From sequence record PQ471515.1: 64,000 nucleotides of DNA; one strand, 5' to 3'. Made by a program: the position numbers and the translations under genes. A model generated the notes under the pieces. It was not told the origin of the DNA. It saw only the letters and a list, made by a program, of their open reading frames with translations, and ran no database searches. Shown piece by piece: positions 18,605 through 44,601 of the stretch; the stretch's first letter is position 1, and every line of letters starts with the position of its first letter.

Positions 18605-18622
18605 AAAAGATTAAAAAAGGGA

Positions 18623-18706: not shown

Positions 18707-18827
18707 ATAAGTATTCAGTACTGAAAACTATTTTTAAAAAAGTACTTGCATTGTACTTAGAATCAAGTATAATGTTTTATATCGAGAGGGGGAAATGGTT
18801 CTCCCTCAAAGAATAAGGAATAAAATC

Positions 18828-19049: not shown

Positions 19050-19135
19050 GTATTGACAAAGTATATCAGTACTGTATAATAGTTTACATCAAGGGGAGAA
19101 TAGTTCTCCCCACACCAATAAAAGGAAACAAAATT

Positions 19136-19408
19136 ATGTCCAGCTACTCCGCTACTATGATCATTAAAGATATGAACGGTAATCCTACTTCTGCTGGTGG
19201 ATCATTTGGAAACATTAATTTAGATGGTCGGTTATCCATGCAATCAGCCATCGATGCAGCGAAAGAAGTTTTTAAGAATGAATGTACTGTAAGTAAGCTG
19301 GATTATATGGGATTCGCTATCGAGAAAACTAATCGTTTTGTGAACTACAAAAATCCACTGATGATCGATACTAACCTGAAAGCAAACGAAGTGGAATACT
19401 TATTATGA
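19136..19408 (+). CDS. hypothetical early protein
   Basis: Promoter, hairpin, RBS. Confidence 0.85.
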   Translation: MSSYSATMIIKDMNGNPTSAGGSFGNINLDGRLSMQSAIDAAKEVFKNECTVSKLDYMGFAIEKTNRFVNYKNPLMIDTNLKANEVEYLL

Positions 19409-19596
19409 CAGTTGAAGAAGTTAAAAAAGTACTGGCAGTACTACGATATCATAATCATTGCAAGGTGAAGAATGATCCTGATTATGTTGATTCATCCCTG
19501 GAGGAAGACACCTTAAACGCGATAAGCCATATGCAAACATTAGCAAAGCGTATGACCGAAAAGAATAGGCCGGACTATATCGGAAATAAAATTTAA
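19405..19596 (+). CDS. hypothetical protein
   Basis: ATGA overlap. Confidence 0.75.
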   Translation: MTVEEVKKVLAVLRYHNHCKVKNDPDYVDSSLEEDTLNAISHMQTLAKRMTEKNRPDYIGNKI

Positions 19597-19683
19597 AAAG
19601 TACTTGCATTGTAGTTAGATTAACGTATAATGTTTTATATCGAGAGGGGGAAATGGTTTCCCCTCAAGTCCAGGAGATACACC

Positions 19684-19947
19684 ATGAACACTATCGAAAT
19701 CACTATCAATGCACACGTATACGACAACGTAGTACTGCAAACTACTATGACCGCTAATGATACCAGTACTTTGCGGAATACTGTTATTAGTGCCGTATGT
19801 GCTGCAATCGGTGATGTTGCCCTGGAAAATGCAGAACATATCAACAACGGTTTCACTATGTGCAAACGTGATAACGCAAAACATATCATCGTGGAAGGTT
19901 ACGGCGGTGTAGAATTTAATGTTTATATGAAAAAAGTACTTGCATAA
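19684..19947 (+). CDS. hypothetical early protein
   Basis: Promoter, AGGAG RBS; start at MNTIEI. Confidence 0.85.
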   Translation: MNTIEITINAHVYDNVVLQTTMTANDTSTLRNTVISAVCAAIGDVALENAEHINNGFTMCKRDNAKHIIVEGYGGVEFNVYMKKVLA

Positions 19948-20014
19948 TAACTAAAACAAAGTATAATGTTTTGCATAGGGGGAGATATCCTCCCCCACTA
20001 AAAGGAGTAATAAA

Positions 20015-20239
20015 ATGGCTAACTTTGATGAACTGATGCGGGAAGTAGCTAACCTGGCAGAAGAGAAGAAATCATTCGATTCTATCTATAACACCGCTCA
20101 CCGTGATTCAGTACTGGCATGTAACCAGGATCAAAAAGATGAACTAATCGCCACATATCATGAAGCATGGAAGTACTACCGACAATGGGAGAAAGAAGAA
20201 AGCGAGTCTACCATCGAAGGTATCAATAATCTAATCTAA
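20015..20239 (+). CDS. acidic hypothetical protein
   Basis: Promoter, hairpin, AGGAG RBS. Confidence 0.85.
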   Translation: MANFDELMREVANLAEEKKSFDSIYNTAHRDSVLACNQDQKDELIATYHEAWKYYRQWEKEESESTIEGINNLI

Positions 20240-20313
20240 AGTTTTATTTCAGTACTATTGACATAGCTTGATAGTACTGATGTAATAACTTTACTAACTA
20301 AAGGGGAAACATA

Positions 20314-20571
20314 ATGGAGCAGTTCACACAATATCGGGTAAATCCTCAAGCTATGGCCTACGTAGAAGACCATAAAACGTTACCAGTACTGCAACCAGTT
20401 AAAGGCCGTATCTATCGTGGCCTTGCCTGGGATACGGCCCAGGATGGATATAAAACCGTCGCCGTGGGGATGTATTGCGGGAATGGTGAATGGTTTGATC
20501 CTAGCAATCCGATTGCACTTGACAGTACTGAAAAAATGAAATGGGCCGACTACATCGAAGATATTTCATAA
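20314..20571 (+). CDS. hypothetical early protein
   Basis: Promoter and RBS. Confidence 0.85.
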   Translation: MEQFTQYRVNPQAMAYVEDHKTLPVLQPVKGRIYRGLAWDTAQDGYKTVAVGMYCGNGEWFDPSNPIALDSTEKMKWADYIEDIS

Positions 20572-20661
20572 AAACTATTTGACAGTACTAACCAGTAATG
20601 TATAATGTTTTACATAGAGCGGGGGAATAGTTCTCCCGCCAATAGTTTGGAGTTAAACATT

Positions 20662-20862
20662 ATGTCTATCGCTATCGCCCTGGTTGAAGTACTGAAAGAA
20701 GCTAAAGCCAACCTTATCGATGTACAGATTAAGGAATTGCAAAACGGCTTAATCGGCTGTACTTGTACCGCTGGTGGAGCGGCAGACTATCGAGAACACG
20801 AATCACTCGAATCACTGGTTCGGTATCTTACCATGATCGTTGATGATTGGAGAATCATCTAA
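20662..20862 (+). CDS. hypothetical early protein
   Basis: Promoter, GGAG RBS; start at MSIAIA. Confidence 0.8.
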   Translation: MSIAIALVEVLKEAKANLIDVQIKELQNGLIGCTCTAGGAADYREHESLESLVRYLTMIVDDWRII

Positions 20863-20885
20863 CAAAAAAAAGAATAAAAAAGGGA

Positions 20886-20960
20886 TTGACTCCGGTCAGT
20901 CCCTTTGCTATTATATACGCATAGACAAAAACTAGCCCACAGGGTGCATAGGTGTATCTA
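20886..20960 (+). ncRNA. promoter-driven ORF-less CCCA-NN-GGGTGC element
   Basis: TTGACT-17-TATTAT; core 20935-20947; Chi at 20994. Confidence 0.6.
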
Positions 20961-21109
20961 AAATATATAGTTAATAACGGTGAGTAACTATCTGCTGGTG
21001 GAGTGAAAACTATTAATAAAAAAACTATTGACAAAGTATATCAGTACTGCAATAATGTATCTCGTAGGGCGGCAATGGTGCGACGGCCCACAAAGTTAGG
21101 AGCTTCAAA

Positions 21110-21442
21110 ATGACTACTTCAATCGCTATCGTTAAAGCTTTCATCCGTACCAATGTTTCTTCTGTATTCATCGACGGACTGGATCGGGAAGTAGAATACT
21201 CAATCATTATCGCACAAACGGTAAACGGTGCTCGGTACATCCTGAATGATAGTGAAGCAAATCACTACTACTTCACTAAAGCCACTGGCTTTAAACGCAT
21301 CGATGCTGATGTAGTATACGCTAAGATGAATAAGCTGGTAGACAAGATTAACGCGAAAGGTACTATCGATTTACAGTACTGGACCGAAACCGATCCAGAA
21401 TATGGATCACACCGCTACCTGAATCCAGGTATCAAAATGTAA
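21110..21442 (+). CDS. hypothetical early protein
   Basis: Promoter, AGGAG RBS. Confidence 0.85.
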   Translation: MTTSIAIVKAFIRTNVSSVFIDGLDREVEYSIIIAQTVNGARYILNDSEANHYYFTKATGFKRIDADVVYAKMNKLVDKINAKGTIDLQYWTETDPEYGSHRYLNPGIKM

Positions 21443-21531
21443 AAAGTACTTGCATAGTACTTAGATTCATGTATAATGTTTTACATAGAGAGGGGGAAAT
21501 GGTTCTCCCTCCTAAATTAAGGAGTTTTATC

Positions 21532-21933
21532 ATGACCTTCTCAATCACTTCCTTCGCTGACGTTTTAGTACTGGCTCGGACTTTTGGTAAAGATGCACTG
21601 GAGTACGCTGTAAGTAATGGCACTATCCAACCGGAACAGTGCCGCATCATTGGAAACTGCAAACGTTGGGCGGTATCCAATACTATTGCACTGGAAAACT
21701 TCAACGATGGCAACAATGAATATTCTGTTGATGCAGTATTCGAAGCCGTAGACCTGGGCGGTATCTATAACACTAACCTGAATGATGTGCGTATCGTTCG
21801 CACGGGGTTCGGTGCTTATGATGTATCTATCCGTGAAGCTATGGACAATGGATACATTAGCAAGGACTTACTTGCTCACATCATGCAGCTATGGACGGAA
21901 CGTAACGAAGCACGCACTATCTTAGGGCTGTAA
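21532..21933 (+). CDS. hypothetical early protein
   Basis: Promoter, hairpin, AGGAG RBS. Confidence 0.85.
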   Translation: MTFSITSFADVLVLARTFGKDALEYAVSNGTIQPEQCRIIGNCKRWAVSNTIALENFNDGNNEYSVDAVFEAVDLGGIYNTNLNDVRIVRTGFGAYDVSIREAMDNGYISKDLLAHIMQLWTERNEARTILGL

Positions 21934-22001
21934 GCGTTACACATCACTAAACATCATAGGCCGCTCTCTAGCGGCCTTAACTATATCAGGAGGGCATACA
22001 T

Positions 22002-22211
22002 ATGTTCTATACAGTATATAGCGTTCTAGGCACTATTGCAGGCGTACATGATAACGTCGATAGTGCTATGCGTACAGTACTGCAACAGGTTCCACTAAAG
22101 CCTAAGACCATTAAGCAGATGACAGCACGACTAACCAGGGCGACGGCTGGCGTGGAAGTATGGCAGGACTATGGGGATACACAGATAATCGTAAGCGTAA
22201 CGAAGGATTAA
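22002..22211 (+). CDS. hypothetical protein
   Basis: AGGAGG RBS. Confidence 0.75.
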   Translation: MFYTVYSVLGTIAGVHDNVDSAMRTVLQQVPLKPKTIKQMTARLTRATAGVEVWQDYGDTQIIVSVTKD

Positions 22212-22235
22212 TGCGTAAAAGGATTTAGTACTGAA

Positions 22236-22318
22236 TCATAAAAAAGTCAAGGCATTTTTAAACTTCAGCGTTAAAAAAATGCATAGGTAATCCCTTGACT
22301 TTTATGAATAAAAAGGGA
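22236..22318. repeat. nested inverted repeat at the early-block boundary
   Basis: TCATAAAAAAGTCAAGG 22236-22252 vs CCTTGACTTTTATGA 22293-22307; inner GCATTTTTAAAC/GTTAAAAAAATGC. Confidence 0.7.
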
Positions 22319-22459
22319 TTGGACTATGGCAAAATGCGTAGGGGGCTAAAGGGCGGGTAACCTTAGCGACTTCGATAAAGGGGTATTACTTATAAAATGT
22401 TATTGACTTTTATATGAATCGTATATTATTGGATTGATATTATTTTTAATGGAGTCCCT

Positions 22460-22657
22460 ATGCGTATTTTAACTCAAGAAGAGCACAACCACACACTCAT
22501 ATCCAACATGGCATATATTCTACATATGTCACATATCCGTGGTATGGCATATAAGCGTGAATTGGTTATGAAACTTTTCATAGGAACTAACTATCAAGAA
22601 AAGTATATCGAACTATACTTACAAGAATTACGAAGGGACATAAAAGGAAGACGATGA
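22460..22657 (+). CDS. family B paralog
   Basis: FIGTNYQE. Confidence 0.9.
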   Translation: MRILTQEEHNHTLISNMAYILHMSHIRGMAYKRELVMKLFIGTNYQEKYIELYLQELRRDIKGRR

Positions 22658-22854
22658 AAATGCGTATTTTAAATAAAGAAGATTATCAAGAACTGTTACG
22701 TAAAAACATGGTAAAGATTTATAACACAGACACAAACTTAGAACGAATTGAGTTATACCTTTTGATTACATTGGGAACAAGCTATCAGGGAAGATGGGTG
22801 ATTCAATATATGGATGCATTGAAAAATGAAATATTATCCACGAGGAAACAATGA
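22654..22854 (+). CDS. family B paralog
   Basis: TLGTSYQG. Confidence 0.9.
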   Translation: MKMRILNKEDYQELLRKNMVKIYNTDTNLERIELYLLITLGTSYQGRWVIQYMDALKNEILSTRKQ

Positions 22855-23060
22855 AAACTATAACACGAACCCAATCATACGGTCTTATCTTGAGATACAT
22901 GGACTTAATGTTGGATATCAGAAAAGACCTTCCTAAAACTGCAATTGAAGTTGCAAGAGCAGAGATCCGCATGTTGGCTGTACTGAACACAAACCATCAG
23001 GAAGAGTATGTTGACGATTGGATTCGATTTTTAATAGAAGATATTAAGAGGAAACTATGA
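22851..23060 (+). CDS. family B paralog
   Basis: VLNTNHQE. Confidence 0.9.
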   Translation: MKTITRTQSYGLILRYMDLMLDIRKDLPKTAIEVARAEIRMLAVLNTNHQEEYVDDWIRFLIEDIKRKL

Positions 23061-23269
23061 TTTTTTTAACACCAGAAGAATATAAGATACGTTTTGTTTC
23101 TGTCCAGAATAAAATCTTAATTATATACAATTCAAATGCAGACCTTAACTTATCAAGGGTATTAGAAAAAGATTTACTTATGGGTGCATTTTTGGATACA
23201 GACTTTCAGGTGTATTATGTAGGGGAATACTTAATTGCACTCCAGAATTACATTAAGAGTAAACTATGA
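23057..23269 (+). CDS. family B paralog
   Basis: FLDTDFQV. Confidence 0.9.
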   Translation: MIFLTPEEYKIRFVSVQNKILIIYNSNADLNLSRVLEKDLLMGAFLDTDFQVYYVGEYLIALQNYIKSKL

Positions 23270-23478
23270 ATAGCATTAACTCAAATCTATATGCCGAACG
23301 CGTCGCTGCAAGACAACTTGAAATTCTCATAGTATATGAAGAGACTGATGATTTGAACTTAGCATTAGTATTGGAAAATGATATACTATTGGGTGCATTC
23401 CTCGGCACAGATTATCAGGAGCACTTCTTGAATGAGTATATAATTGCACTCCAGAAATACATTAAGAGCAAACTATGA
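23266..23478 (+). CDS. family B paralog
   Basis: FLGTDYQE. Confidence 0.9.
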   Translation: MNSINSNLYAERVAARQLEILIVYEETDDLNLALVLENDILLGAFLGTDYQEHFLNEYIIALQKYIKSKL

Positions 23479-23693
23479 AACATTTAAGTAATTACGAGAA
23501 GAATAAAATTATCGTTGCTGCAATAAACAAATATTTTACACTTCCTCACACAGAAGGTTTATGTGTAAGGGAACACAGGATAAACACCACCGATATACGC
23601 ATGATGGCTGTACTGGGGACGAACTTTCAGGAAGAGTATGTTGTTGCACACATAGTTGCCCTCACTGATTTAATAAGGGACAAATGCAAATGA
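23475..23693 (+). CDS. family B paralog
   Basis: VLGTNFQE. Confidence 0.9.
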   Translation: MKHLSNYEKNKIIVAAINKYFTLPHTEGLCVREHRINTTDIRMMAVLGTNFQEEYVVAHIVALTDLIRDKCK

Positions 23694-23908
23694 AAGACAT
23701 AAACACTCAAGAATATCTTAAACGATTAGAACAAGGGAAGAACTTTAGACTTCAAGTTTACGATGATGAATCACTAACATCCAATGAAAAGTATGTTATA
23801 CTAACAGACTCAACATTAATACCATTTGTAGGAACAAACTATCAGGAGGTTATGGTAGACAACCACATCACGGCCTTAAAATGTCATGTCAGGGATTTAG
23901 GTAAATGA
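23684..23908 (+). CDS. family B paralog
   Basis: FVGTNYQE. Confidence 0.9.
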   Translation: MQMKDINTQEYLKRLEQGKNFRLQVYDDESLTSNEKYVILTDSTLIPFVGTNYQEVMVDNHITALKCHVRDLGK

Positions 23909-24162
23909 AACACTTAACTGATGATGAATTTGAAACTATAATTCGTAAACTAACCCCCATCACAAGGATAGTCTACGGTGACCCCAGCCTTACATGGAAC
24001 CAAATGCGAGCTAAAGTTAATGAGCTATGGTTGCTGTACTTTATGGGGACTCAATATCAAGATAAGTTTTGCACAGAATATATCGAACAATTAACGAATG
24101 TTATACAGGATAAACTAGATGATTATTTGCTCACAAAACATGAAGACTTTATCAGGAGTTGA
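23905..24162 (+). CDS. family B paralog
   Basis: FMGTQYQD. Confidence 0.9.
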   Translation: MKHLTDDEFETIIRKLTPITRIVYGDPSLTWNQMRAKVNELWLLYFMGTQYQDKFCTEYIEQLTNVIQDKLDDYLLTKHEDFIRS

Positions 24163-24391
24163 GTATCAAACTGCCCTATTCTCTTTAATCCATACCCTTA
24201 GAAAAAACAATGCCTTACATGGTGCACCTGAAGTGGATGTTATCAACGGTGAACTTTATCTTATGAAATTCATTGGAACAAACTATCAAGATCTGTTCAT
24301 TCAACGATACTTATCAGCATTAAGAAACCAAATCCAATATAAAACCATCAAGGCCAAAAAAGAATGGAATAAACAATGCGACACAGACTAA
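24140..24391 (+). CDS. family B paralog
   Basis: FIGTNYQD; start at MKTLSG. Confidence 0.85.
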   Translation: MKTLSGVEYQTALFSLIHTLRKNNALHGAPEVDVINGELYLMKFIGTNYQDLFIQRYLSALRNQIQYKTIKAKKEWNKQCDTD

Positions 24392-24627
24392 ATCACAAAA
24401 TGTATTGTAAACTATTACAGACACTGGCACAGAAACACTATGACACGGTATCTGGAATATTACCCTATGATATCATGCGTTTACTTCACTGTGAGGCCGA
24501 GATGCTTGTACTGATGACTGGCACAGATAAAAACGCAATTGCCAAATCAATAGATATGTTCATCGAAGCACAATGTCAACACATTAGAACCGAGATATGG
24601 AGGCGAGAGAATGATAACCCTAAATGA
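24376..24627 (+). CDS. family B paralog (divergent)
   Basis: MTGTDKNA. Confidence 0.8.
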   Translation: MRHRLNHKMYCKLLQTLAQKHYDTVSGILPYDIMRLLHCEAEMLVLMTGTDKNAIAKSIDMFIEAQCQHIRTEIWRRENDNPK

Positions 24628-24826
24628 GTATCAGTATCATTGGAGGTTACAAGCTATAAGAAGGAAAGTTGTTAGTATTTCTTTAGACAAGTCTATTGCA
24701 CAAGAGGACAAATGTGTTATAATAGCTGAAATGAAGTTGGGTGCTTTCGTAGGAACAAACTATCAAAACATCTACACTGACGTATTGTTAAGTGCCTTAC
24801 GTAACAAGGTGATATCAAAAGAATGA
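24611..24826 (+). CDS. family B paralog
   Basis: FVGTNYQN. Confidence 0.9.
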   Translation: MITLNEYQYHWRLQAIRRKVVSISLDKSIAQEDKCVIIAEMKLGAFVGTNYQNIYTDVLLSALRNKVISKE

Positions 24827-25041
24827 GAAAATTACAAGGCTTTGAATACATCAGACTCCTGAAAACATGTGCCAACAGAAGAGTAAAGATTCAATCTGAT
24901 AAGAGCATCCCTGCCAACCTAAAACATGCAATGATAGCTGAACTCTATGCAGGGGCACTCATAGGGACAAACTATCAACAAATGTATATAGACATGTGGG
25001 TTGATGCATTAGTCAAGGAGATCCAAAGTAAATGCAAATGA
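24823..25041 (+). CDS. family B paralog
   Basis: LIGTNYQQ. Confidence 0.9.
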   Translation: MRKLQGFEYIRLLKTCANRRVKIQSDKSIPANLKHAMIAELYAGALIGTNYQQMYIDMWVDALVKEIQSKCK

Positions 25042-25250
25042 TTAATTTAAGTAAAGATGAATATTATGATCGTCTTGCAAAAACTTATCCAGCACGTAAC
25101 GCCGTTTATAATAGTAACATTATTGAACGCTCAAAGAAGTTGATTGTAGTGAATGAGATTAAGATGCTTTCAGTCTTAGGAACAAACTATCAAGAGAATG
25201 CTGTACTGTTGTTAATTGATGCCCTCCAGAGAGAGATACAAAGTAAATGA
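25032..25250 (+). CDS. family B paralog
   Basis: VLGTNYQE. Confidence 0.9.
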   Translation: MQMINLSKDEYYDRLAKTYPARNAVYNSNIIERSKKLIVVNEIKMLSVLGTNYQENAVLLLIDALQREIQSK

Positions 25251-25483
25251 TTAATTTATCTTTCCATGAATATCAAAAACGTTTAAATGCATCAAGGGAT
25301 ATAAGGATTCAAATCTTCAATAACAAAAAATTGAAACCTGACACCAGAAGAATCAAAATAATAGAAGCAGAGTTATGCAACTTCCTGGGGACGAACCATC
25401 AGGAAGGTAAGATAAAAAACTATCTTAGAGAACTAATGAATTGTATCGAAAATAAATGCGATGCTTTGGAGAATAAAAAATGA
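25247..25483 (+). CDS. family B paralog
   Basis: FLGTNHQE. Confidence 0.9.
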   Translation: MINLSFHEYQKRLNASRDIRIQIFNNKKLKPDTRRIKIIEAELCNFLGTNHQEGKIKNYLRELMNCIENKCDALENKK

Positions 25484-25737
25484 TCAATTTAAGTAAAGAT
25501 GAATATACCGAGCGTATGACAAAAATCTCACCTAAACGTAATGCAATCTATTACAGCCAAGAAATTCCACACAGTAAGAAGATGATTATGTATCGTGAGT
25601 TAAAGATGGGTATGTTCTTAGGAACAAACTATCAAGAACCAGAAGTAAATCGCTTAATAAATGAATTACTCATGGAAATCAGAGGTAAGCTGTACTTTCA
25701 TCAAATGACCCAGCCACTGAGGTGTACTAAGAAATGA
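25480..25737 (+). CDS. family B paralog
   Basis: FLGTNYQE. Confidence 0.9.
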   Translation: MINLSKDEYTERMTKISPKRNAIYYSQEIPHSKKMIMYRELKMGMFLGTNYQEPEVNRLINELLMEIRGKLYFHQMTQPLRCTKK

Positions 25738-25949
25738 TCAACATCACATTGCAAGAAAGATTCATCCGAATCAACTATGCAATTACCAAATTAGATGATA
25801 CTATAGGCAACCAAAGTTTACCGTTCAAAACAAGAATGATATTAGAGTGCGAAGCCAAGTTAGGTGTACTGTTAGGGACGCAACACCAACAACGATATGT
25901 GGAAATCTGGATTGATCTTTTAACCCAAAATGCACATGAGAGAATGTAA
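25734..25949 (+). CDS. family B paralog
   Basis: LLGTQHQQ. Confidence 0.9.
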   Translation: MINITLQERFIRINYAITKLDDTIGNQSLPFKTRMILECEAKLGVLLGTQHQQRYVEIWIDLLTQNAHERM

Positions 25950-26180
25950 ATGCAAAAGGAAATGATATACTTAACACATGATGAATTTCAAGAGAAGATG
26001 TTAAAAGCCAATAACATTACTCTTAAGTTCGTTCCAAATCAATCAATATATGAAATGTCTGCGAATGTATTGTTTCAGAAGCTACCATACGTTCTTGGAA
26101 CTGATAAACAAGAATTTATGGTTCAAAATATGATTGAGCATCTTGCAATGAGTATTATGGAAAAAGTAAATGCAAAATGA
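25950..26180 (+). CDS. family B paralog
   Basis: VLGTDKQE. Confidence 0.9.
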   Translation: MQKEMIYLTHDEFQEKMLKANNITLKFVPNQSIYEMSANVLFQKLPYVLGTDKQEFMVQNMIEHLAMSIMEKVNAK

Positions 26181-26430
26181 AATGATATACTTAACCTATA
26201 ATGAATACGTCGAGAGATTAGTTCGTGCCAAGAGATATACCAATAAACGTCCAATTGACCTAAACCAAACCCCAGCAGAAAGGAGTGCAGAAGTATTATT
26301 CCAATCACTACCATATCTTCTGGGAACTGATAGACAAGAGGAATATGTTGCACGTATGATTAGATATCTTAAAATCACTATTAAGGAAAAAGTAAATGCA
26401 AATGCAAATGAAATACTTAACAGACGATGA
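26170..26430 (+). CDS. family B paralog
   Basis: LLGTDRQE. Confidence 0.9.
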   Translation: MQNEMIYLTYNEYVERLVRAKRYTNKRPIDLNQTPAERSAEVLFQSLPYLLGTDRQEEYVARMIRYLKITIKEKVNANANEILNRR

Positions 26431-26653
26431 GTTAAAAGAACGATTAATTAAATCCAGAAAACTTACAAATCAACTTCCAAACGACACAAACAAGTCACAT
26501 GCCGAAAGGAGTGCAGAAGTTTTATACATTCAACTCCTGTACTTTCTTGGAACTGACAGACAAGAGTATTACATTGAAAGTATGCTTCGATATCTTAAAT
26601 TTTCTATAAAGGAAAAGGTACATGCTCAAGAATTTAAAAATCCTAACAGTTAA
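26396..26653 (+). CDS. family B paralog
   Basis: FLGTDRQE. Confidence 0.9.
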   Translation: MQMQMKYLTDDELKERLIKSRKLTNQLPNDTNKSHAERSAEVLYIQLLYFLGTDRQEYYIESMLRYLKFSIKEKVHAQEFKNPNS

Positions 26654-26864
26654 TGAATATCATAAGATTGTAATGAAAACTAATAGTGCAATTTCTAAAA
26701 AATCAAACCCAAAGTACATACTGGAACACACATTTGAAGAACGTCAATTAGCTTTAGTTGAAGCAAAACTTCTTGCACTCCTAGGAACAAACTATCAGGA
26801 AGAATACATCAGAAAACTAATATACCTTTTAACTAAACACATCAGGAAAAGAAAAAAAGCATGA
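26622..26864 (+). CDS. family B paralog
   Basis: LLGTNYQE. Confidence 0.9.
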   Translation: MLKNLKILTVNEYHKIVMKTNSAISKKSNPKYILEHTFEERQLALVEAKLLALLGTNYQEEYIRKLIYLLTKHIRKRKKA

Positions 26865-27091
26865 AGCACTTGACAGATGATGAACATGGGCTTATAGTAA
26901 TGGATGTAATCAACATCGAATACAAAAAGTTGATACGCTACCGTTGTTATGAAGATAAGCAACTCGTTCTAGAAGAACAGAAGTTGTTTCGACTCTTAAA
27001 CACAAACTACCAAGCACAATACGAAGAATCGTATATGTACCTTTTGGCGAGGAAAGCAAAAAGAGATTATGAAAATTTTAAGCCACAGTGA
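26861..27091 (+). CDS. family B paralog
   Basis: LLNTNYQA. Confidence 0.9.
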   Translation: MKHLTDDEHGLIVMDVINIEYKKLIRYRCYEDKQLVLEEQKLFRLLNTNYQAQYEESYMYLLARKAKRDYENFKPQ

Positions 27092-27284
27092 ACAAACAGA
27101 ATTGTTAATCTTTAATACAAGTAAATTCTTAAACATAACATTGTCTGATATAGATGATGATGAAAAAGAGTTACTTAGAGCAGATTTAAGAGTTCTTTTA
27201 TATATTGGAACTAACTTCCAAGAGCAATTCGTTGAGGACTACATCGATGAACTTAAAGAATCTGTACTGAGAACATGCAAATGA
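27069..27284 (+). CDS. family B paralog
   Basis: YIGTNFQE. Confidence 0.9.
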   Translation: MKILSHSEQTELLIFNTSKFLNITLSDIDDDEKELLRADLRVLLYIGTNFQEQFVEDYIDELKESVLRTCK

Positions 27285-27517
27285 AAATCCTTTCACCAAG
27301 TGAATACCACGAACTATTAAGTAGTTTAATTCTAAAATTGTATATAGCAAAGACCACAGATTTACCTGATGAAGAAAAAAATATTCTAATGAGTGAAATC
27401 TATGTTAATTCTACCCTAGGGACTAACTATCAAGAATGTAATATTAATGATTACATCAAAGAACTAAAAAGGTTTATCCAATGCAAATGCGAATCATTAC
27501 CGAAACAGAATACCTAA
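27275..27517 (+). CDS. family B paralog
   Basis: TLGTNYQE. Confidence 0.9.
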   Translation: MQMKILSPSEYHELLSSLILKLYIAKTTDLPDEEKNILMSEIYVNSTLGTNYQECNINDYIKELKRFIQCKCESLPKQNT

Positions 27518-27723
27518 CAATCTTAAATGGACTGTTTTTGAAGTTATTTGCCATTAACACATCAAAACTACCAGATACTGATAAAATTATTAAGTTAAAT
27601 GAAATCTATGTTCAAGCTACACTGGGAACTAACTATCAAGAAGCCAATGTGTATAATTACATTAATACACTCAAAAGGGTAATAAAATTAAAATGCACAA
27701 ACAGCCAATACACAAACCCCTAG
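27481..27723 (+). CDS. family B paralog
   Basis: TLGTNYQE. Confidence 0.9.
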   Translation: MQMRIITETEYLTILNGLFLKLFAINTSKLPDTDKIIKLNEIYVQATLGTNYQEANVYNYINTLKRVIKLKCTNSQYTNP

Positions 27724-27923
27724 GAACAGCAGAATACATTGAACTAATGGCTGCAAACTTCTCATCCTTTAAGAAACTGATGCAAGAATCAAATAATGAT
27801 TTAGAATATCATATCAAAAGTTCAGATTTAAGATTACTACTCACTCTAGGAACAGACAGTCAGTACAAATTCGTACAGGAGCATATTAGAGCACTTTTAA
27901 ATGGCATCAGGGATAAACTATGA
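27693..27923 (+). CDS. family B paralog
   Basis: TLGTDSQY. Confidence 0.85.
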   Translation: MHKQPIHKPLGTAEYIELMAANFSSFKKLMQESNNDLEYHIKSSDLRLLLTLGTDSQYKFVQEHIRALLNGIRDKL

Positions 27924-28135
27924 AGGAAATATCAAATCAAGAGTACTTGGCACTGTTCAGAAAAAATAGTCAAGAATTTCTGAATATTGATACAAGGACT
28001 GATATAAGTGAACTTCAGAAAAATCTTTTGCGTTCAGAGATGATAGTACTGACACTCTTAGGAACACAGCATCAAGAGAGAACTGTTAATTCACACATAG
28101 GTATTCTTATACAGATTGTACAGGAAAAGATATGA
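27920..28135 (+). CDS. family B paralog
   Basis: LLGTQHQE. Confidence 0.9.
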   Translation: MKEISNQEYLALFRKNSQEFLNIDTRTDISELQKNLLRSEMIVLTLLGTQHQERTVNSHIGILIQIVQEKI

Positions 28136-28353
28136 GAATCATAACACAACAAGATATTCTTAAGTTCACAAGGGTTCATGCATCTGAATTTGATGCTATA
28201 TTATCAAAAAGTTACAACAACCCTTATACAGAAGATGTACACTACAATGAATTATGGGTGTATATACTTTTAGGTACAGATCATCAAGAGCAAGCCGTAC
28301 AGAAGTATTTGACAGCTTTACGTGATGCTACAGCTAATGGAGTACATGTTTAA
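28132..28353 (+). CDS. family B paralog
   Basis: LLGTDHQE. Confidence 0.9.
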   Translation: MRIITQQDILKFTRVHASEFDAILSKSYNNPYTEDVHYNELWVYILLGTDHQEQAVQKYLTALRDATANGVHV

Positions 28354-28354
28354 T

Positions 28355-28606
28355 ATGAAAGTACTGACAGAATTAGAAATGTATCATAGATTTAACAAGT
28401 ACTATCATTTACTTAAACCTATACAGAGGATTAAGTGTCCCTTTGTAGTGAAACAGGTATTAATTTATGAGCATAAGTTATTTGTATCATTAGGTACGAA
28501 TGAACAAGAGTATTATTTGAAGTTGTACTTAATTACATTAATAGATTTAATTCACTATAAAACCACACAATCTAAACAAGCTAATAAAGAGAAATATGAA
28601 AACTAA
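28355..28606 (+). CDS. family B paralog
   Basis: SLGTNEQE; start at MKVLTE. Confidence 0.85.
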   Translation: MKVLTELEMYHRFNKYYHLLKPIQRIKCPFVVKQVLIYEHKLFVSLGTNEQEYYLKLYLITLIDLIHYKTTQSKQANKEKYEN

Positions 28607-28934
28607 TATACAACTCAAGGTTTATAAATCATTTGCAAGTACATACATCAAATGCTATACATGTAACTATGTAATGGACTACAAAGGTAAGCCATTTACA
28701 CTTACTTACGATAATACAAGAGGTTTTTATATATCTTTTGCTGATTACAAATATAACATATACGAACACATTGACATTGAAGATTTAAGTACTTTATCAC
28801 AAGAAGAATACTTTCAAGAATCATTAGTATGGGATTTAGAGTTCCCTATGTCATTAGTACATAAAATGATAGTACTAATAAAAGAAACTAAGCCTGTACC
28901 TAATGGTTATGAAGATCACATTATTGAGTATTAA
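28596..28934 (+). CDS. family C, short type
   Basis: LSQEEYFQESLVWD; close paralog of 28949. Confidence 0.9.
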   Translation: MKTNIQLKVYKSFASTYIKCYTCNYVMDYKGKPFTLTYDNTRGFYISFADYKYNIYEHIDIEDLSTLSQEEYFQESLVWDLEFPMSLVHKMIVLIKETKPVPNGYEDHIIEY

Positions 28935-28948
28935 TATATAAGGTAACT

Positions 28949-29290
28949 ATGAAAACTAATATACAACTCAACGTATACAGTTCAGAAGAACATACATATA
29001 TCAAATGCAGTCTATGTAAAGATGTAATGGACTACAAAGGTAAGCCATTCACAATTACTTATGATTCTGATGTTAATGATTTATATATATCATTTCTTAA
29101 TTACGAAAATAAAATATACAAGCACGTTGATATTAAAGATTTAAGTACTTTATCACCAGAGGAATACTTTCAGGAATCGTTAGTATGGGATTTGGAGTTT
29201 CCTATGCCATTAGTACATAAAATGGTAGTCCAAATGAAAGAAGCTAAACCGGAGTTTAACGGTTATGAAGAACACACAATTGAGTATTAA
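28949..29290 (+). CDS. family C, short type
   Basis: LSPEEYFQESLVWD. Confidence 0.9.
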   Translation: MKTNIQLNVYSSEEHTYIKCSLCKDVMDYKGKPFTITYDSDVNDLYISFLNYENKIYKHVDIKDLSTLSPEEYFQESLVWDLEFPMPLVHKMVVQMKEAKPEFNGYEEHTIEY

Positions 29291-29521
29291 ATGAAAAGAT
29301 TATCATACGAAGATTACACCAATCTTATCAGGACTTTACAACCACAAATACAACAAATAAATTCTCTTCCTATACCCCAAGAAGAACGTGCAGTACTGAA
29401 AGATGAGTTAATTTTAAAATGCACAGTAGGAACAAACTATCAAGCTGATAGTGTTCGATATTTAATTTGGGGTTTAATGAGTATAATAGAGAACAAAGCA
29501 GTTGACAGTACTCTATTGTAG
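29291..29521 (+). CDS. family B paralog
   Basis: TVGTNYQA. Confidence 0.85.
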   Translation: MKRLSYEDYTNLIRTLQPQIQQINSLPIPQEERAVLKDELILKCTVGTNYQADSVRYLIWGLMSIIENKAVDSTLL

Positions 29522-29530
29522 TGCTATAGT
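29502..29530 (+). promoter_or_regulatory. sigma70-type promoter at the left edge of the ACT-depleted block
   Basis: TTGACA-17-TATAGT with extended -10 TG. Confidence 0.75.
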
Positions 29531-29561
29531 ACATGAACGTTAATCATTAGGGTAGAAAATT

Positions 29562-29807
29562 ATGTTGAATTTTTTAAATTTCCTTATCGTCTTGTGTATT
29601 GTTCTTGGGATTGCACCATTTGTATTGTATTTCATGGATTCAGATGAAATGCAGAAGATGAATTGTACAAGGACAGGACAGAGTAGAGTAGAGACGATTC
29701 TTATGCCTGTTACGGTTATTGTTAACAACATGCCCATTACCAACATGGTCCCTACCCTAACGACAACGTACCAGTACTCTTGTACAGACGGAGAGAGGTG
29801 GAGATAA
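29562..29807 (+). CDS. membrane-anchored hypothetical protein
   Basis: N-terminal TM helix, two Cys in the C-terminal domain. Confidence 0.8.
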   Translation: MLNFLNFLIVLCIVLGIAPFVLYFMDSDEMQKMNCTRTGQSRVETILMPVTVIVNNMPITNMVPTLTTTYQYSCTDGERWR

Positions 29808-30130
29808 TGCGTAAGTTCAATTGTATTGTACGTAAGAATTCTTGTTACATTGTAGTAGCTGATTTTAATACGGGTTCTGGGTTGAAGATATTTGAGTACA
29901 GAAAATGCAATAATTCTTTTCATTGGAAATTAGGTGCAAGAAAAACAAATACAATTTCAGTACCGAATTTATGTTCTATCTCTGAAGAAGAAGAGTTTCA
30001 GTACTTGTTAGTACATGATGATTCTTTAGGATTTACATTTGTAGATATGAAGGAAGTACAAAAGCAGATGATTGCACATTGTCATCTTCCAAAGAATTTT
30101 GTTCAACGCGTATGTGAATTCTACATATAA
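29807..30130 (+). CDS. family C, short type
   Basis: ISEEEEFQYLLVHD; start at MRKFNC. Confidence 0.85.
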   Translation: MRKFNCIVRKNSCYIVVADFNTGSGLKIFEYRKCNNSFHWKLGARKTNTISVPNLCSISEEEEFQYLLVHDDSLGFTFVDMKEVQKQMIAHCHLPKNFVQRVCEFYI

Positions 30131-30139
30131 GAGAAGAAT

Positions 30140-30451
30140 ATGAAATTTAATATAGCAAAAACATCGAGTATATGTATTTTTGGTTATGCAGAAGAGTTAG
30201 GTGATATTGACATTCTTTTGTACAAAAAGGATGGTGTTATGCATTTCAAGTACCAGGATGAAGAGGCAGACAATTATCTTTTACCTAATTTAGTACAAAT
30301 GCAGGAAGAGGAATTATTCCAGTACAGCTTAATATACGACATTGATATTTGCACGATGCCAGTATTAATTAATATACAAAAAGTTATGCTCGATATGTAT
30401 GATAAGCTAATACAAGGTATGTCAGGGAGGATCATTGAAATCGATATATAA
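30140..30451 (+). CDS. family C, short type
   Basis: MQEEELFQYSLIYD. Confidence 0.9.
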   Translation: MKFNIAKTSSICIFGYAEELGDIDILLYKKDGVMHFKYQDEEADNYLLPNLVQMQEEELFQYSLIYDIDICTMPVLINIQKVMLDMYDKLIQGMSGRIIEIDI

Positions 30452-30647
30452 GAATTTACCTAATGAATATATGTTGAAGTACAAAGAGTTTATTAAAGAT
30501 GTATATGTAGATCCTTTCAATATCAAATTTGCAGAGTTCGAAGTATCATTTTATCTAGGGACAATAGTACAGGACCAATACGTTGATAATCTAATAAGGT
30601 GTTTGAAAAAGGAGATACAATGCAGACCCAAAGGTATAAAAAGGTAG
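30435..30647 (+). CDS. family B paralog (divergent)
   Basis: YLGTIVQD. Confidence 0.8.
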   Translation: MKSIYKNLPNEYMLKYKEFIKDVYVDPFNIKFAEFEVSFYLGTIVQDQYVDNLIRCLKKEIQCRPKGIKR

Positions 30648-30892
30648 ATTCTTTATTGTACGCTTCAAAGTACAGGGATTTTTGTTTACGCGGTTCTGGA
30701 GGGGGAGAGGAAGATTTCGCTCTGAGATTATCAGAATTCAATATGTTATTTTATCTTGGTACAAAAGAACAAGAAGATACAGTACAGAAATTTCTCAATC
30801 ACCTTGTACAAAAAATTAATATGCAAATTTTGATGCTTGAGTTACAGAATGAGATAAATGAATATGAATCCAGAAATAGTTCAGGATCTTAA
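30620..30892 (+). CDS. family B paralog (divergent)
   Basis: YLGTKEQE; start at MQTQRY. Confidence 0.8.
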   Translation: MQTQRYKKVDSLLYASKYRDFCLRGSGGGEEDFALRLSEFNMLFYLGTKEQEDTVQKFLNHLVQKINMQILMLELQNEINEYESRNSSGS

Positions 30893-31253
30893 AAAAGTAA
30901 TATTTCTTTTGAATACAAGAAGCTCTTTATATAAGGAGTTCCAAGATAAGGATGGTTCTTTTAAACCATTATGTATAGAATTCAATGATTTAATTACAGA
31001 TGCATTGTTTGAATTTTCAGAGAAATATCAAGATACAGTGTTCGGTGTTAAGAATGCTATTAATCCAAGGACAGGTACAAGGAAGATAACGTTATCTCAT
31101 TTTGCATTTGACAATAAAGATTTTTTCAGTTATAATCCCAGTACATCTTTATATTTTATTCCAAAAGGAGACAAGAATAGTCCTATTCATTACGGATGGA
31201 TTATATCTTATGTAGTGCAAGGGAAGGAGTATCCTATTAAATGGCACGATTAG
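30858..31253 (+). CDS. hypothetical protein
   Basis: 131 aa ORF in operon. Confidence 0.8.
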   Translation: MNMNPEIVQDLKKVIFLLNTRSSLYKEFQDKDGSFKPLCIEFNDLITDALFEFSEKYQDTVFGVKNAINPRTGTRKITLSHFAFDNKDFFSYNPSTSLYFIPKGDKNSPIHYGWIISYVVQGKEYPIKWHD

Positions 31254-31392
31254 GGAGTGAAGATTATAATATGAATATATTATTAAGAAATATTAATGCA
31301 GATTATTGTGTATGGGTTAAGAATAGAGATATGATGTATTATGATTTTTATTTAGATTGTGCCATTAAGCGTTTTTTAAGAGAAGAACATTA

Positions 31393-31575
31393 ATGAAAGA
31401 CGTTAATACAAAAGCAATAAATGATTTAAATGATTCTTTATTAGTAAGTATCAAGATGTATTACAATATACATTTAAAGGGTGGTATAGATAATTACAAT
31501 TATTATCTTTCATTAGTTACAATAGAACATTTAAATTATCTAGATCATTTATTACATCCAAATCCTCCATATTAA
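31393..31575 (+). CDS. small hypothetical protein
   Basis: ORF in operon. Confidence 0.6.
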   Translation: MKDVNTKAINDLNDSLLVSIKMYYNIHLKGGIDNYNYYLSLVTIEHLNYLDHLLHPNPPY

Positions 31576-31586
31576 GGAATACCAAT

Positions 31587-31916
31587 ATGAATAAAATTAT
31601 TTTAGCTCTAACATTTATTTTATCAATGTTCGCTAATACCGTACAGGCCGCTGCACATGATGTATATCAATTTGATTGCAGATTACAAAACAATGACAAA
31701 ATCGACATTTATTTGCACAATACAGAAGTTCCGTATTTGCAGATTGAGTCCACAAAGTACATTTATTTTGGTGAGAATTCAGTACAGGAATTTTTATTCA
31801 AGCACACATCAGAAGATGTGATTATTTCTTTGCAGTTCGTTGATAGTTCATTAACGCTGATGCATTTCAAAAATGAAAAAGGTTTAGTTACCGTGCTTAA
31901 ATGCACAAGGGTATAA
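31587..31916 (+). CDS. hypothetical exported protein
   Basis: Signal-peptide-like N-term, AAGGA RBS. Confidence 0.85.
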   Translation: MNKIILALTFILSMFANTVQAAAHDVYQFDCRLQNNDKIDIYLHNTEVPYLQIESTKYIYFGENSVQEFLFKHTSEDVIISLQFVDSSLTLMHFKNEKGLVTVLKCTRV

Positions 31917-31917
31917 T

Positions 31918-32478
31918 ATGAATGATATTGAGTTATTGGTACATAAGATTTGCACAATATCGTTAGTGCTGAACAATGCGAATACAGTACAGAGTTCCCT
32001 TTTAAGAATTAATAAAGTTGGGAGTAGTTTATATTTGGAAGTAAAAGCTGGTTTTGCAGGTCAGTACAATGATAAAATCAAAGAAGAAGTTAAGGGAAGT
32101 GAAGATGCTTTCATTGAGGTTTGTGCAACAGTTGGTTCAAATCCAATTTCAGTATCACCTTTAATGCGAAATGAAAATTCAGAATTTGATTCCAGTTTTG
32201 AAGGTTATTTGTGGTATAATTATGGTGATGATTATTTTATATATCAGAATTCCAAAACGGATTACAGTGAAGAAGGTATAAAATTCATTGATCCTTACAA
32301 TGAAGCAGAAGTATTTCAGACATCCCTAATATACAATACAAATCAAATGAAGTATCTTATGTTGTTTAGTACAATGCATTTGAATCCATTGAAAGATAAT
32401 TTAAAATTTTTCATTCGTTTAGAATTAGTTGATATTGCTTATGATCTTTTAATGCAAGGATATAGTTATGAAGTATAA
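31918..32478 (+). CDS. family C, long type
   Basis: NEAEVFQTSLIYN; paralog of 32555. Confidence 0.9.
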   Translation: MNDIELLVHKICTISLVLNNANTVQSSLLRINKVGSSLYLEVKAGFAGQYNDKIKEEVKGSEDAFIEVCATVGSNPISVSPLMRNENSEFDSSFEGYLWYNYGDDYFIYQNSKTDYSEEGIKFIDPYNEAEVFQTSLIYNTNQMKYLMLFSTMHLNPLKDNLKFFIRLELVDIAYDLLMQGYSYEV

Positions 32479-32548: not shown

Positions 32549-32554
32549 TAATAT

Positions 32555-43872: not shown

Positions 43873-44405
43873 GAAAAATTAACATTAATGATTATGATGC
43901 ATTACAAGATTTATCAAAAAAGATTCGCACTATCGTACCAGTACTGAAGAAATGCAGTACTGGATTAATCGATCCTAGTACTGTTGTTAATGAGAAGTAC
44001 AATTTTCATTATGTATTACAGGGTACTGGGGCATTCCAGAAGTGTGAGGTGCGTGAGAAACACGTAATTGATACATCATTGTTTTCTATTGGTGCACCTA
44101 TGTCGAATAATACTATTTTCCTGGATGACGCAGGAAATATTCAACAATTAACATTTAAGAAAAGGAAAAAGAACAATAACATTGGTGTGTACGCGATGAA
44201 GTGGGGTCAACCTGATTTGAAGCGTGAAATTCACATCCCTAAGTACAATTACAATTCATTTGAAGAACAGTGCTTTCAACTATCTTGTACTGATCCTGAC
44301 TATGCTATTATTCAGTTCTATATGGAATTGCAGATTGCATTTAACAGTAATTTGTATATTAACTTATTGGCGATGAACATCGATGAAGTATTCAAAAACA
44401 TTTAA
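43869..44405 (+). CDS. family C, long type
   Basis: SFEEQCFQLSCTD; TTG start with GAGG RBS. Confidence 0.8.
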   Translation: MRKININDYDALQDLSKKIRTIVPVLKKCSTGLIDPSTVVNEKYNFHYVLQGTGAFQKCEVREKHVIDTSLFSIGAPMSNNTIFLDDAGNIQQLTFKKRKKNNNIGVYAMKWGQPDLKREIHIPKYNYNSFEEQCFQLSCTDPDYAIIQFYMELQIAFNSNLYINLLAMNIDEVFKNI

Positions 44406-44601
44406 TCGAATTGAATACATGAGAACTGTGAGTGCAGTGTGGGACATATGGTTCACTACTAAACCAAAAATGGATTACCATGACTTTAAGCTATTGTTCT
44501 TCGTTGGTTCTAATAAACAGGACGTTGCAATGAAGGGTTATATTGAGCACTTACAGGAACTAATACAGAAGAGGATTTATGAAAATAATAGACCAAAGTG
44601 A
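44383..44601 (+). CDS. family B paralog (outlier)
   Basis: FVGSNKQD. Confidence 0.8.
   Translation: MKYSKTFNRIEYMRTVSAVWDIWFTTKPKMDYHDFKLLFFVGSNKQDVAMKGYIEHLQELIQKRIYENNRPK

Follow-up and report, generated by a model that had tools for sequence, protein, structure and literature searches.

A long-maintained tandem family of small paralogous genes with a conserved core and a variable surface beside the terminal repeat of the jumbo phage Turkey3

The subject of this work is a tandem family of very small genes at the left end of the genome of Escherichia phage Turkey3, a 361-kb Asteriusvirus (PQ471515.1). The window is the whole stretch of DNA analysed, 64,000 nucleotides (nt) of that record; its bases 22000–30000 match Turkey3 at 100% and at the same coordinates, and 35 further records, from PBECO4/121Q-like jumbo phages (Asteriusvirus) that infect E. 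coli and Salmonella, match the same segment at 83–96%. In the list of open reading frames (ORFs), 28 contiguous plus-strand ORFs of 65–94 amino acids (aa) occupy 22460..28606, all of them members of the PHROG 4148 family, and five outlying family genes, also on the plus strand, begin at 29291, 30435, 30599, 44383 and 44579 (Table 1). A profile hidden Markov model (HMM) seeded with the 28 array genes and run over all ORFs of 35 aa or longer on either strand of the window recovered exactly 33 proteins, with the outliers at E values of 1.5e-14 to 2.5e-6 and the next match at E 0.76; a profile search of the other 71 kb of Turkey3 sequence that was fetched found zero additional members. The ORF list, the HMM and PHROG 4148 all bear out a first-pass annotation, made from the sequence alone, that had counted 28 consecutive plus-strand genes and 33 family members in total. 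Its five outlier positions also exist as it gave them, with one correction: 30620 is an in-frame ATG within an ORF that starts at GTG 30599. By plain BLAST clustering, in which 70 of 164 tiled genes fall in paralog groups, the family is the largest such group in the window, and it accounts for about 5% of Turkey3 genes (33 of 617 annotated features).

The array is compact. Every one of its 27 junctions either overlaps or leaves no more than 1 nt between genes, 14 of them being ATGA overlaps, and at most junctions a purine-rich, Shine-Dalgarno-like run lies within the C-terminal codons of the upstream gene. Translational coupling had been claimed for the array; the close junctions are there, and it is their geometry that points to coupling. 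Because there are zero gaps of more than 40 nt between genes from 22460 to 29521, and because the junctions overlap, the 28 genes are probably one operon. Two starts probably lie later than the start of the longest ORF, at 24140 rather than 24119 and at 28355 rather than 28322, and several 'MQM...' starts are ambiguous by 2–4 codons. No gene in the array is broken, as the annotation had also noted: in Turkey3 all 28 are intact, with full-length HMM matches.

Table 1. Members of the family and upstream signals in the Turkey3 window. E values for members 1–28 come from an HMM seeded with those same genes; the outliers were outside the seed.
Feature	Coordinates	Strand	Evidence or remark
Array of 28 consecutive PHROG 4148 genes without intergenic gap	22460..28606	+	
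Member 1, 65 aa	22460..22657	+	HMM E 4.6e-19
Member 2, 66 aa, alternative start 22660	22654..22854	+	HMM E 1.1e-18
Member 3, 69 aa	22851..23060	+	HMM E 2.1e-22; tree sister of Turkey5 13725
Member 4, 70 aa	23057..23269	+	HMM E 2.3e-23; nearest paralog is the adjacent 23266, 51%
Member 5, 70 aa, acidic pI 4.4	23266..23478	+	HMM E 6.9e-21
Member 6, 72 aa	23475..23693	+	HMM E 3.3e-25; PHROG 4148 E 7e-14
Member 7, 74 aa, alternative start 23690, strain-variable	23684..23908	+	HMM E 9.7e-25
Member 8, 85 aa	23905..24162	+	HMM E 6e-27; PHROG 4148 E 9e-21
Member 9, probable start 24140 (83 aa)	24119..24391	+	HMM E 9.9e-21; HMM match from 24140
Member 10, 83 aa, most aberrant motif (TGTDKN, 2-aa insert)	24376..24627	+	HMM E 4.5e-19; alignment
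Member 11, 71 aa	24611..24826	+	HMM E 7e-24
Member 12, 72 aa	24823..25041	+	HMM E 5.4e-27; PHROG 4148 E 1.5e-19
Member 13, 72 aa, alternative start 25038	25032..25250	+	HMM E 1e-24; 56% identity with member 15
Member 14, 78 aa	25247..25483	+	HMM E 2.1e-26; PHROG 4148 E 8e-22
Member 15, 85 aa, protein modelled with AlphaFold2	25480..25737	+	HMM E 1.5e-27
Member 16, 71 aa, variable: no ortholog in vB_Ec-M-J (EcMJ) and ph0011	25734..25949	+	HMM E 6.9e-23; ortholog table
Member 17, 76 aa, alternative start 25962	25950..26180	+	HMM E 9.3e-22; in 25962/26182/26408 tandem-duplicate clade
Member 18, 86 aa, alternative start 26182	26170..26430	+	HMM E 8.1e-23
Member 19, 85 aa, alternative start 26408	26396..26653	+	HMM E 8.1e-25; Turkey5 ortholog 63-64% identity
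Member 20, 80 aa, most basic (pI 10.0)	26622..26864	+	HMM E 7.9e-22
Member 21, 76 aa	26861..27091	+	HMM E 4.4e-18
Member 22, 71 aa, most acidic (charge -7.4)	27069..27284	+	HMM E 5.3e-24
Member 23, 80 aa, alternative start 27281	27275..27517	+	HMM E 1.9e-26; PHROG 4148 E 1e-17
Member 24, 80 aa, alternative start 27487	27481..27723	+	HMM E 1.7e-24; 51% identity with member 23
Member 25, 76 aa, best conserved across clades	27693..27923	+	HMM E 4.6e-22; Turkey5 ortholog 79-80% identity
Member 26, 71 aa	27920..28135	+	HMM E 2.2e-22
Member 27, 73 aa	28132..28353	+	HMM E 2.5e-22; sister of Turkey5 17078
Member 28, probable start 28355 (83 aa)	28322..28606	+	HMM E 3.9e-21; HMM match from 28355
Outlier, 76 aa, after two genes of an unrelated 112-aa family	29291..29521	+	HMM E 1.5e-14; PHROG 4148 E 1e-12
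Outlier, 70 aa, TTG start	30435..30647	+	HMM E 1.5e-8; PHROG 4148 E 9e-6
Outlier, 97 aa, GTG 30599 or ATG 30620	30599..30892	+	HMM E 3.2e-7
Outlier, 72 aa, GS in place of GT	44383..44601	+	HMM E 2.5e-6; strongly supported sister of Turkey5 22646
Outlier, 64 aa	44579..44773	+	HMM E 2.9e-12; PHROG 4148 E 1.6e-16
Conserved block over the inferred right boundary of the direct terminal repeat (about 22362/22363), reading ...GCGGGTAACC to the left and TTAGCGACTTCGA... to the right	22310..22385	+	Near-invariant in 7 phages including divergent Turkey5
Sigma-70-type promoter candidate: -35 TTGACT 22403-22408, -10 TATTAT 22424-22429, 15-nt spacer	22403..22429	+	Seven-phage alignment
Shine-Dalgarno GGAG of first array gene (GGAGTCCCTATG)	22451..22454	+	Invariant in 7/7 aligned phages

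All ten members tested matched PHROG 4148 (E 4.2e-26 to 9.3e-6, over profile positions of about 1–72 of 74), an entry of unknown function that is this family itself and carries no description of function, structure or tandem organisation. Pfam, NCBIfam and PADLOC gave nothing consistent for the family, only scattered chance matches of single members, and a sequence-profile search of the PDB found nothing below E 0.48. The first-pass annotation had recognised no known domain, and these searches agree with it. Nor was a description of the family found in the searchable literature.

The paralogs are as diverged as had been claimed, with a median identity of 28% and a maximum of 58%, and the proposed signature motifs are recovered in the member alignment, where G48, T49, Q52 and L63 are at least 90% conserved and conservation is also strong at L4, E8, E40, I60 and I67. 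Fourteen hydrophobic columns (L4, L13, I23, I36, L41, L43, F46, L47, V56, I60, L63, I67, L71 and M1) have a mean entropy of 1.76 bits versus 2.91 for the other columns; outside the core and the two helix-start motifs described below, entropy is about 3–3.8 bits, close to maximal variability. Across the 33 members the net charge runs from -7.4 to +9.8 and the isoelectric point (pI) from 4.4 to 10.0. Cysteines are not conserved in the family, and there are no metal ligands. The grand average of hydropathy is negative in 31 of 33 members (maximum +0.22), which suggests that the proteins are soluble.

AlphaFold2, supplied with the member at 25480–25737 and the 33-paralog alignment, returned a confident model of a single four-helix domain (predicted local distance difference test, pLDDT, 95.6; predicted template modelling score, pTM, 0.78), with helices at residues 6–15, 17–24, 31–45 and 52–77 and with residue 2 joined to T49 by a one-residue beta-bridge. 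In this model T/S5-x-x-E8 and N/D50-x-x-E53 mark where helices 1 and 4, respectively, begin. Fold signals known from helix starts include N-capping boxes and hydrophobic staples, and both signature motifs can be read as signals of this type, given their helix-cap pattern in the model. A constant scaffold with a variable surface had been proposed for the family; the conserved core and motifs, the entropy profile, the model and the range of charge all support that description. A Foldseek comparison, which had been suggested as a check, found no significant neighbour of the model in the PDB, where the best match was a TetR-like regulator (2qtq_D, E 3.5, probability 0.23, TM-score 0.41) and all TM-scores were below 0.5, including that of the equally non-significant T4 Vs.4 (E 6.9, TM-score 0.45). 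Foldseek against BFVD returned only paralogs from phages 121Q, PBECO4, slurp01 and UB. Known anti-defence proteins with solved structures, among them DNA mimics (Ocr/ArdA), Acr proteins and nucleotide sponges (Tad/Acb), gave no sequence or fold match in the PDB profile search or Foldseek.

That the top PDB match, although not significant, is of the TetR type brings up the possibility that the family consists of nucleic-acid-binding regulators, in which a helix-loop-helix would be used in the manner of a helix-turn-helix (HTH) and each paralog would have its own DNA or RNA site. Nineteen of the 33 members are basic (pI >8), the 'L-G-T-x-x-Q' junction of helices 3 and 4 superficially resembles an HTH turn, and a similar proposal was made by Iyer et al. 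for the ~35-copy zinc-ribbon family of phage G (PMC7824862). However, 12 of 33 members are acidic (pI <6.5, down to 4.4), and no HTH or other DNA-binding model in Pfam or NCBIfam matches the family: Pfam gave zero matches to HTH families at E up to 1, and NCBIfam only one single-member chance match, to the Sar family at E 0.019. The weak Foldseek scores and the model, which places T49 in the beta-bridge with residue 2 and gives N/D50...E53 a helix-cap pattern, also speak against an HTH, and it is rather unlikely that these proteins are regulators of this kind.

The same near-invariant residues could instead mark a docking face. The paralogs would then be adaptors that attach through this face to one machine, such as the phage ClpP-type proteases or a host protease or chaperone, and recruit different host proteins through the variable face. 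It is true that G48 and the polar T49 and Q52 are under stricter conservation than core positions, that the Turkey3 genome encodes three annotated ClpP-type subunits, and that an adaptor-like protein for ClpCP is known from phage SPO1 (PMC6873191). As an account of the family, however, this is speculation, since the motif is explicable as a fold signal, and we regard it as quite improbable.

Comparison with relatives shows that the family is kept by selection. The array lies at the same site in phages vB_Ec-M-J, 121Q, phAPEC6, G17 and ph0011, with 26–32 profile hits each, most of them full-length; each of these five relatives also has 1–5 partial matches, including 1–3 truncated remnants. The record of phage CMSTMSU (MH494197.1), flagged UNVERIFIED_ORG and holding only 24 annotated coding sequences in 15.8 kb, was excluded; because of that flag and of frameshifts throughout the record, its 'broken' copies are most likely sequencing errors and are unfit as evidence of pseudogenes. 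The ratio of nonsynonymous to synonymous substitution rates (dN/dS, pairwise Nei-Gojobori), pooled over orthologs, is 0.34–0.37 in five genome pairs, as against 0.23–0.31 for non-family genes on both flanks. In the per-column analysis that the annotation had recommended, the lowest ratios (pN/pS) fall in the motif and core columns. The family members are real coding genes under purifying selection. That the array might be functionless duplicated DNA, drifting neutrally or selfish, is largely excluded by these data and is the least probable of the accounts considered here. It is the case that dN/dS is somewhat above that of the neighbours (0.35 vs 0.27) and that a few truncated copies exist in relatives, but each of five independent genome pairs gives a ratio far below 1, the hits in every good-quality relative are mostly full-length, the 28 genes of Turkey3 are intact, core and motif columns are selectively constrained, and collinear orthologs survive a split at which dS is saturated, as described below. 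Neither a match to a characterised family nor frequent pseudogenes or neutral evolution in relatives was seen.

Within this constraint the set of genes gains, loses and swaps members between strains. Ortholog identity is a mosaic within one genome pair, from 100% down to 55%; against phAPEC6, for example, successive values are 56, 83, 87, 89, 73, 99, none, 100, 65, 95%, and so on. The member at 23684 has orthologs (at least 96% identity) in 7 of 36 array-carrying phage records and is absent from vB_Ec-M-J, though the core DNA of that phage is 98% identical to Turkey3, and the outlier at 29291 has orthologs in 11 of the 36. Hypervariability of the array within the genus was considered and rejected, the array being 86–88% identical in nucleotides to phAPEC6 and G17 versus 84% for the core block.

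The expansion itself is old. For 12 of the 33 members the closest paralog is the neighbouring gene, against an expectation of 2.0 and at most 9 in any of 2000 shuffles, and mean paralog identity is 34% at a gene distance of 1 versus 28% at distances of 6 or more; there are no recent duplicates, given that the highest paralog identity is 58%. Tandem duplication produced the paralogs, at a time well before the divergence of the sequenced Asteriusvirus phages. The Turkey5/JNE01 clade, which shares 76% nt identity with Turkey3 in the ligase–ClpP core block, carries an array of its own, with ~20 members, at the corresponding site. Members from Turkey3 and Turkey5 interleave in a maximum-likelihood tree (17 label changes vs a shuffled mean of 15), and at least nine well-supported Turkey3–Turkey5 sister pairs are collinear along both arrays, from which it follows that the expansion predates the split of the two clades, whose core dS is about 1.4 (saturated). 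Across this split, family orthologs are mostly 36–46% identical with dN of about 0.5–0.8, which is 7–10 times that of annotated enzymes (84–93% aa identity, dN 0.05–0.09). The copy-number comparison that had been called for gives 26–32 hits per good-quality relative, about 20 in Turkey5 and, in the 24 kb examined of Klebsiella phage RaK2, ~5 weak and scattered members with no array. The maintained repertoire of the first-pass annotation is thereby supported by dN/dS, by intact arrays in five relatives and by the collinear ortholog pairs shared with Turkey5. Tandem paralogs, neighbours more alike than distant members, and gain, loss and truncated copies among relatives are the features of birth-and-death evolution, and taken together the PHROG 4148 genes form an ancient tandem family, maintained by selection, in which the core is constant, the surface varies and members turn over by birth and death.

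A profile search of 1.84 billion representative proteins matched 101 clusters at 50% identity. The named sources of family proteins are without exception phages of E. coli or Salmonella, or 'E. coli' drafts with a ~350-kb phage contig, and complete RefSeq E. coli genomes hold zero family members; the family is an old expansion that belongs to the Asteriusvirus lineage alone. Many family members (P0131, P0136, P0137, P0143 and others) lie on contigs of 344–359 kb labelled 'Escherichia coli' in public drafts, and these contigs are whole jumbo-phage genomes co-assembled with bacterial isolates. The 1368-aa protein P0077, with six matched stretches, was rejected as a relative, being a repeat-rich, tape-measure-like protein with a helical-repeat bias.

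The position of the array on the genome gives some indication of when it may be expressed. In vB_Ec-M-J a direct terminal repeat (DTR) is annotated at 1–21525 (21,525 bp), with the first array gene at 21624, and DTRs of ~21 kb were verified by restriction mapping in phage fEgEco12 (PMC13070987). By alignment of the gap upstream of the array, the vB_Ec-M-J boundary maps to about 22362 in Turkey3, which would place the first array gene ~98 nt to its right and the array outside the terminal redundancy. This 248-nt gap is conserved in seven phages including Turkey5 and holds the boundary block, a promoter candidate and the GGAG; in phAPEC6, G17, ph0011 and Turkey5 the promoter site reads TTGACT-N16-TAAAAT. 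The DTR itself (the first 22.2 kb) carries ~45 small genes with ~40 intergenic gaps, most of which contain a near-consensus sigma-70 promoter of one of two recurring types, TTGACA-16-TATAAT (12/12) and TTGCAA-16-TATAAT, and in phage CBB a comparable region was proposed to be early (PMC5259590). Because the gap holds a conserved promoter candidate, the DTR is rich in promoters and the CBB region was proposed as early, we infer that the array is probably transcribed early by host RNA polymerase as one operon.

Several other properties of this end of the genome were recorded. The layout of the DTR (window 1–22211) resembles a host-takeover or pre-early module, and within it 1092–2577 is a 1.5-kb stretch with no tiled plus-strand ORF and a perfect TTGACA-16-TATAAT at 1759. 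The ~75-nt block at the boundary (…AGGGATTGGACTATGG…GCGGGTAACC to the left, TTAGCGACTTCGA… to the right) is a candidate terminase or end-formation signal. Across window 1–64000, G+C content is 0.38–0.42 over most of the terminal repeat and 0.30–0.35 from the array onward. Between Turkey3 9143–22211 and Turkey5 351–13183, DTR proteins are 88–100% identical, with one pair at 84%, while core DNA is ~76% identical; identity collapses exactly at the DTR boundary, which suggests that the whole DTR was recently exchanged between the clades of these two phages, isolated in the same study.

A further possibility is that the proteins are packaged in the capsid in the manner of the T4 internal proteins (IPs), with the N-terminal MKxL(T/S)xxEY as a capsid-targeting signal and the variable body injected along with the DNA to disarm host nucleases. 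The conserved N-terminal motif ahead of a variable body would suit this, as would a gene content that varies as at the T4 IP region, and phAPEC6 capsids are described in the accessible text of one study as holding an inner body with components not assigned (PMC7247149). The mass spectrometry of phAPEC6 virions lists 62 proteins with none of gp462c–gp489c, the array orthologs, among them, though a 4.66-kDa protein was detected (PMC7247149). In the model the N terminus is part of the fold, with residue 2 bridged to T49 and a helix 1 cap pattern at T/S5...E8, which speaks against an N-terminal peptide that the prohead protease would cleave off. The promoter candidate is of the sigma-70 type, unlike the ATAAATA late promoters described in related phages. 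Packaging is accordingly to be considered very unlikely.

Two natural fusions that involve family members exist. One, P0127 (154 aa, from a contig of the European Nucleotide Archive), joins the orthologs of the genes at 26622 and 26861 in frame at their ATGA junction. The other, P0092 (AXC36995.1 of Escherichia phage UB, 269 aa, in 13 contigs), consists of a family domain and an unrelated C-terminal region of 200 aa; that it is the 44579 gene joined to its downstream neighbour was rejected, as BLAST found no similarity and nothing in the window is homologous to the C-terminal 200 aa. P0127 might be taken to indicate that the paralogs are subunits which, by way of the conserved core or motif face, build up a hetero-oligomeric scaffold or other structure inside the cell, with coupling supplying the subunits together. 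Overlap at all junctions would favour such co-production, and the near-invariance of G48, T49, Q52 and L63 would fit a shared interface. However, this fusion was seen once, on a 3.1-kb contig, and its model is poor, with no confident domain packing (pLDDT 70, pTM 0.50). Members are gained and lost between close strains, as with the loss of 23684 from vB_Ec-M-J, their charges are very heterogeneous, and the phAPEC6 virion proteome cited above lacks family members. Co-assembly is unlikely, if marginally less so than the other alternatives.

The explanation that we tentatively prefer, at a little short of an even chance, is that these are co-expressed early four-helix paralogs, each of which binds a different partner in the infected cell. 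Host RNA polymerase would make the 28 genes as one long mRNA from a sigma-70-type promoter just inside the unique DNA beside the terminal repeat, and chain translation through the overlapping stop and start codons would yield all 28 proteins together soon after infection. Each paralog's own surface would then bind a different partner, either a host-takeover target or an immunity protein, which would be blocked, diverted or decoyed. On this explanation the array would correspond to the host-takeover clusters that other large lytic phages carry at their terminal repeats, but enlarged and built on a single fold. That the members are, more narrowly, binders or decoys of host defence proteins may be suggested by analogy and by indirect features: the likely early promoter, the non-detection in virions and the variation in gene content.

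A number of observations weigh against this explanation. Co-expression of 28 genes at similar levels would suit a multi-subunit assembly too, and the near-invariance of G48, T49 and Q52, which is stricter than helix capping needs and could mark a shared binding site, would fit the adaptor or co-assembly readings better. With zero alignment columns at pN/pS >1, ongoing positive selection or an arms race has left no sequence signature, and the array is not more diverged than core DNA inside the genus (86–88% vs 84% nt). Fast divergence across the Turkey3–Turkey5 split is not special to the family, because other 'hypothetical' genes of the core block diverge alike (27–63% aa identity). With its suboptimal spacer of 15 nt, the Turkey3 array promoter candidate escaped both consensus scans, which admitted spacers of 16–18 nt only. 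Finally, no Asteriusvirus transcriptome was found in the searchable literature.

Tandem paralogs are familiar from other viruses. The multigene families MGF110 and MGF360 of African swine fever virus (ASFV) and the terminal families of poxviruses are tandem paralogs by a genome terminus, with birth-and-death turnover and copy numbers that differ from strain to strain. The Turkey3 paralogs resemble them in lying in tandem beside a terminus and differing in content between strains, but show no sequence or structural kinship with them, belong to a virus of a bacterial host, encode much smaller proteins and show no recent 'accordion' amplification. The T4 IP locus is variable in content, and its small proteins share a short conserved N terminus. 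Turkey3 is alike in both respects; unlike the IPs, its array proteins were not detected in phAPEC6 virions, have an N terminus inside the predicted fold and lie behind an early-type promoter candidate.

The nearest functional analogue is the host-takeover module of phage SPO1, a set of small early proteins with separate host targets, such as RNA polymerase, HU or ClpCP (PMC8208478, PMC8892312, PMC6873191). Like this module and the other early clusters at terminal repeats of large lytic phages (Herelleviridae, the pre-early region of T5), the Turkey3 locus is a dense cluster of small genes at the terminal redundancy with candidate host-type promoters, and it is the Turkey3 terminal repeat (1–22.3 kb), with one consensus promoter per gene, that looks like an SPO1-type module. 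In contrast, the SPO1 genes are mutually unrelated, whereas the Turkey3 array is 28 genes of one fold, lying just outside the repeat, probably as one overlapping operon and not as many single-gene units. For the scale of the expansion, the nearest published analogue is the zinc-ribbon family of Bacillus jumbo phage G, of ~35 copies and unknown role (Iyer et al., 2021; PMC7824862). In both jumbo phages a single, very small protein has multiplied to about 30 copies, but the array fold is all-helical in the model and without metal ligands, and it belongs to another lineage with no detectable homology.

Other gene families surround the array. The region 3' of it (28596–48520) holds further paralog groups, several of them pairs and triplets, including a 10-member group at 28596, 28949, 38666 … 48158 and a 6-member group of 146–164 aa at 40856 … 48905; two ~112-aa genes lie 5' of each of the family outliers at 29291 and 30435. 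Proteins of ~60 aa (M..EYY..KL … Y.EVLKLI) form a second tandem family, with at least 14 copies, that straddles the origin of the circular record (window 93–1091 and Turkey3 record 357727–359491). Kinship between this family and PHROG 4148 was rejected, with an hhalign probability of 0.3%. At 337098–357400 of the Turkey3 record there are ~19 tandem minus-strand genes for proteins of 300–450 aa, annotated as RCC1, 'HERC1' or 'NS1A-binding' repeat proteins; the phAPEC6 'DNA condensation protein' entries are virion components and may be counterparts of these RCC1-type genes.

Jumbo phages encode mostly 'hypothetical proteins', and here about one gene in twenty belongs to a single uncharacterised and long-kept fold. 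The family represents an expansion, on one previously undescribed fold, of small accessory proteins that this large lytic phage probably makes early. The comparative data separate universal members from strain-variable ones. An adaptor repertoire, in which the near-invariant G-T-x-x-Q face would dock the paralogs on one machine (such as ClpP-type proteases) and hypervariable faces would capture different host proteins, is improbable; if true, it would mean that with one operon the phage gets rid of about thirty host factors or immunity proteins simultaneously. Its weaker form, thirty independent inhibitors of thirty defence proteins, would be the largest single-fold phage counter-defence set known to us. 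If the paralogs co-assemble or share a docking partner, they would point to an unknown intracellular structure or a proteolytic mechanism of takeover. If they are target-specific binders, they would amount to about thirty probes or inhibitors for E. coli proteins, ready to use on a tiny, well-folding scaffold, and would also explain the broad host ranges of these phages.

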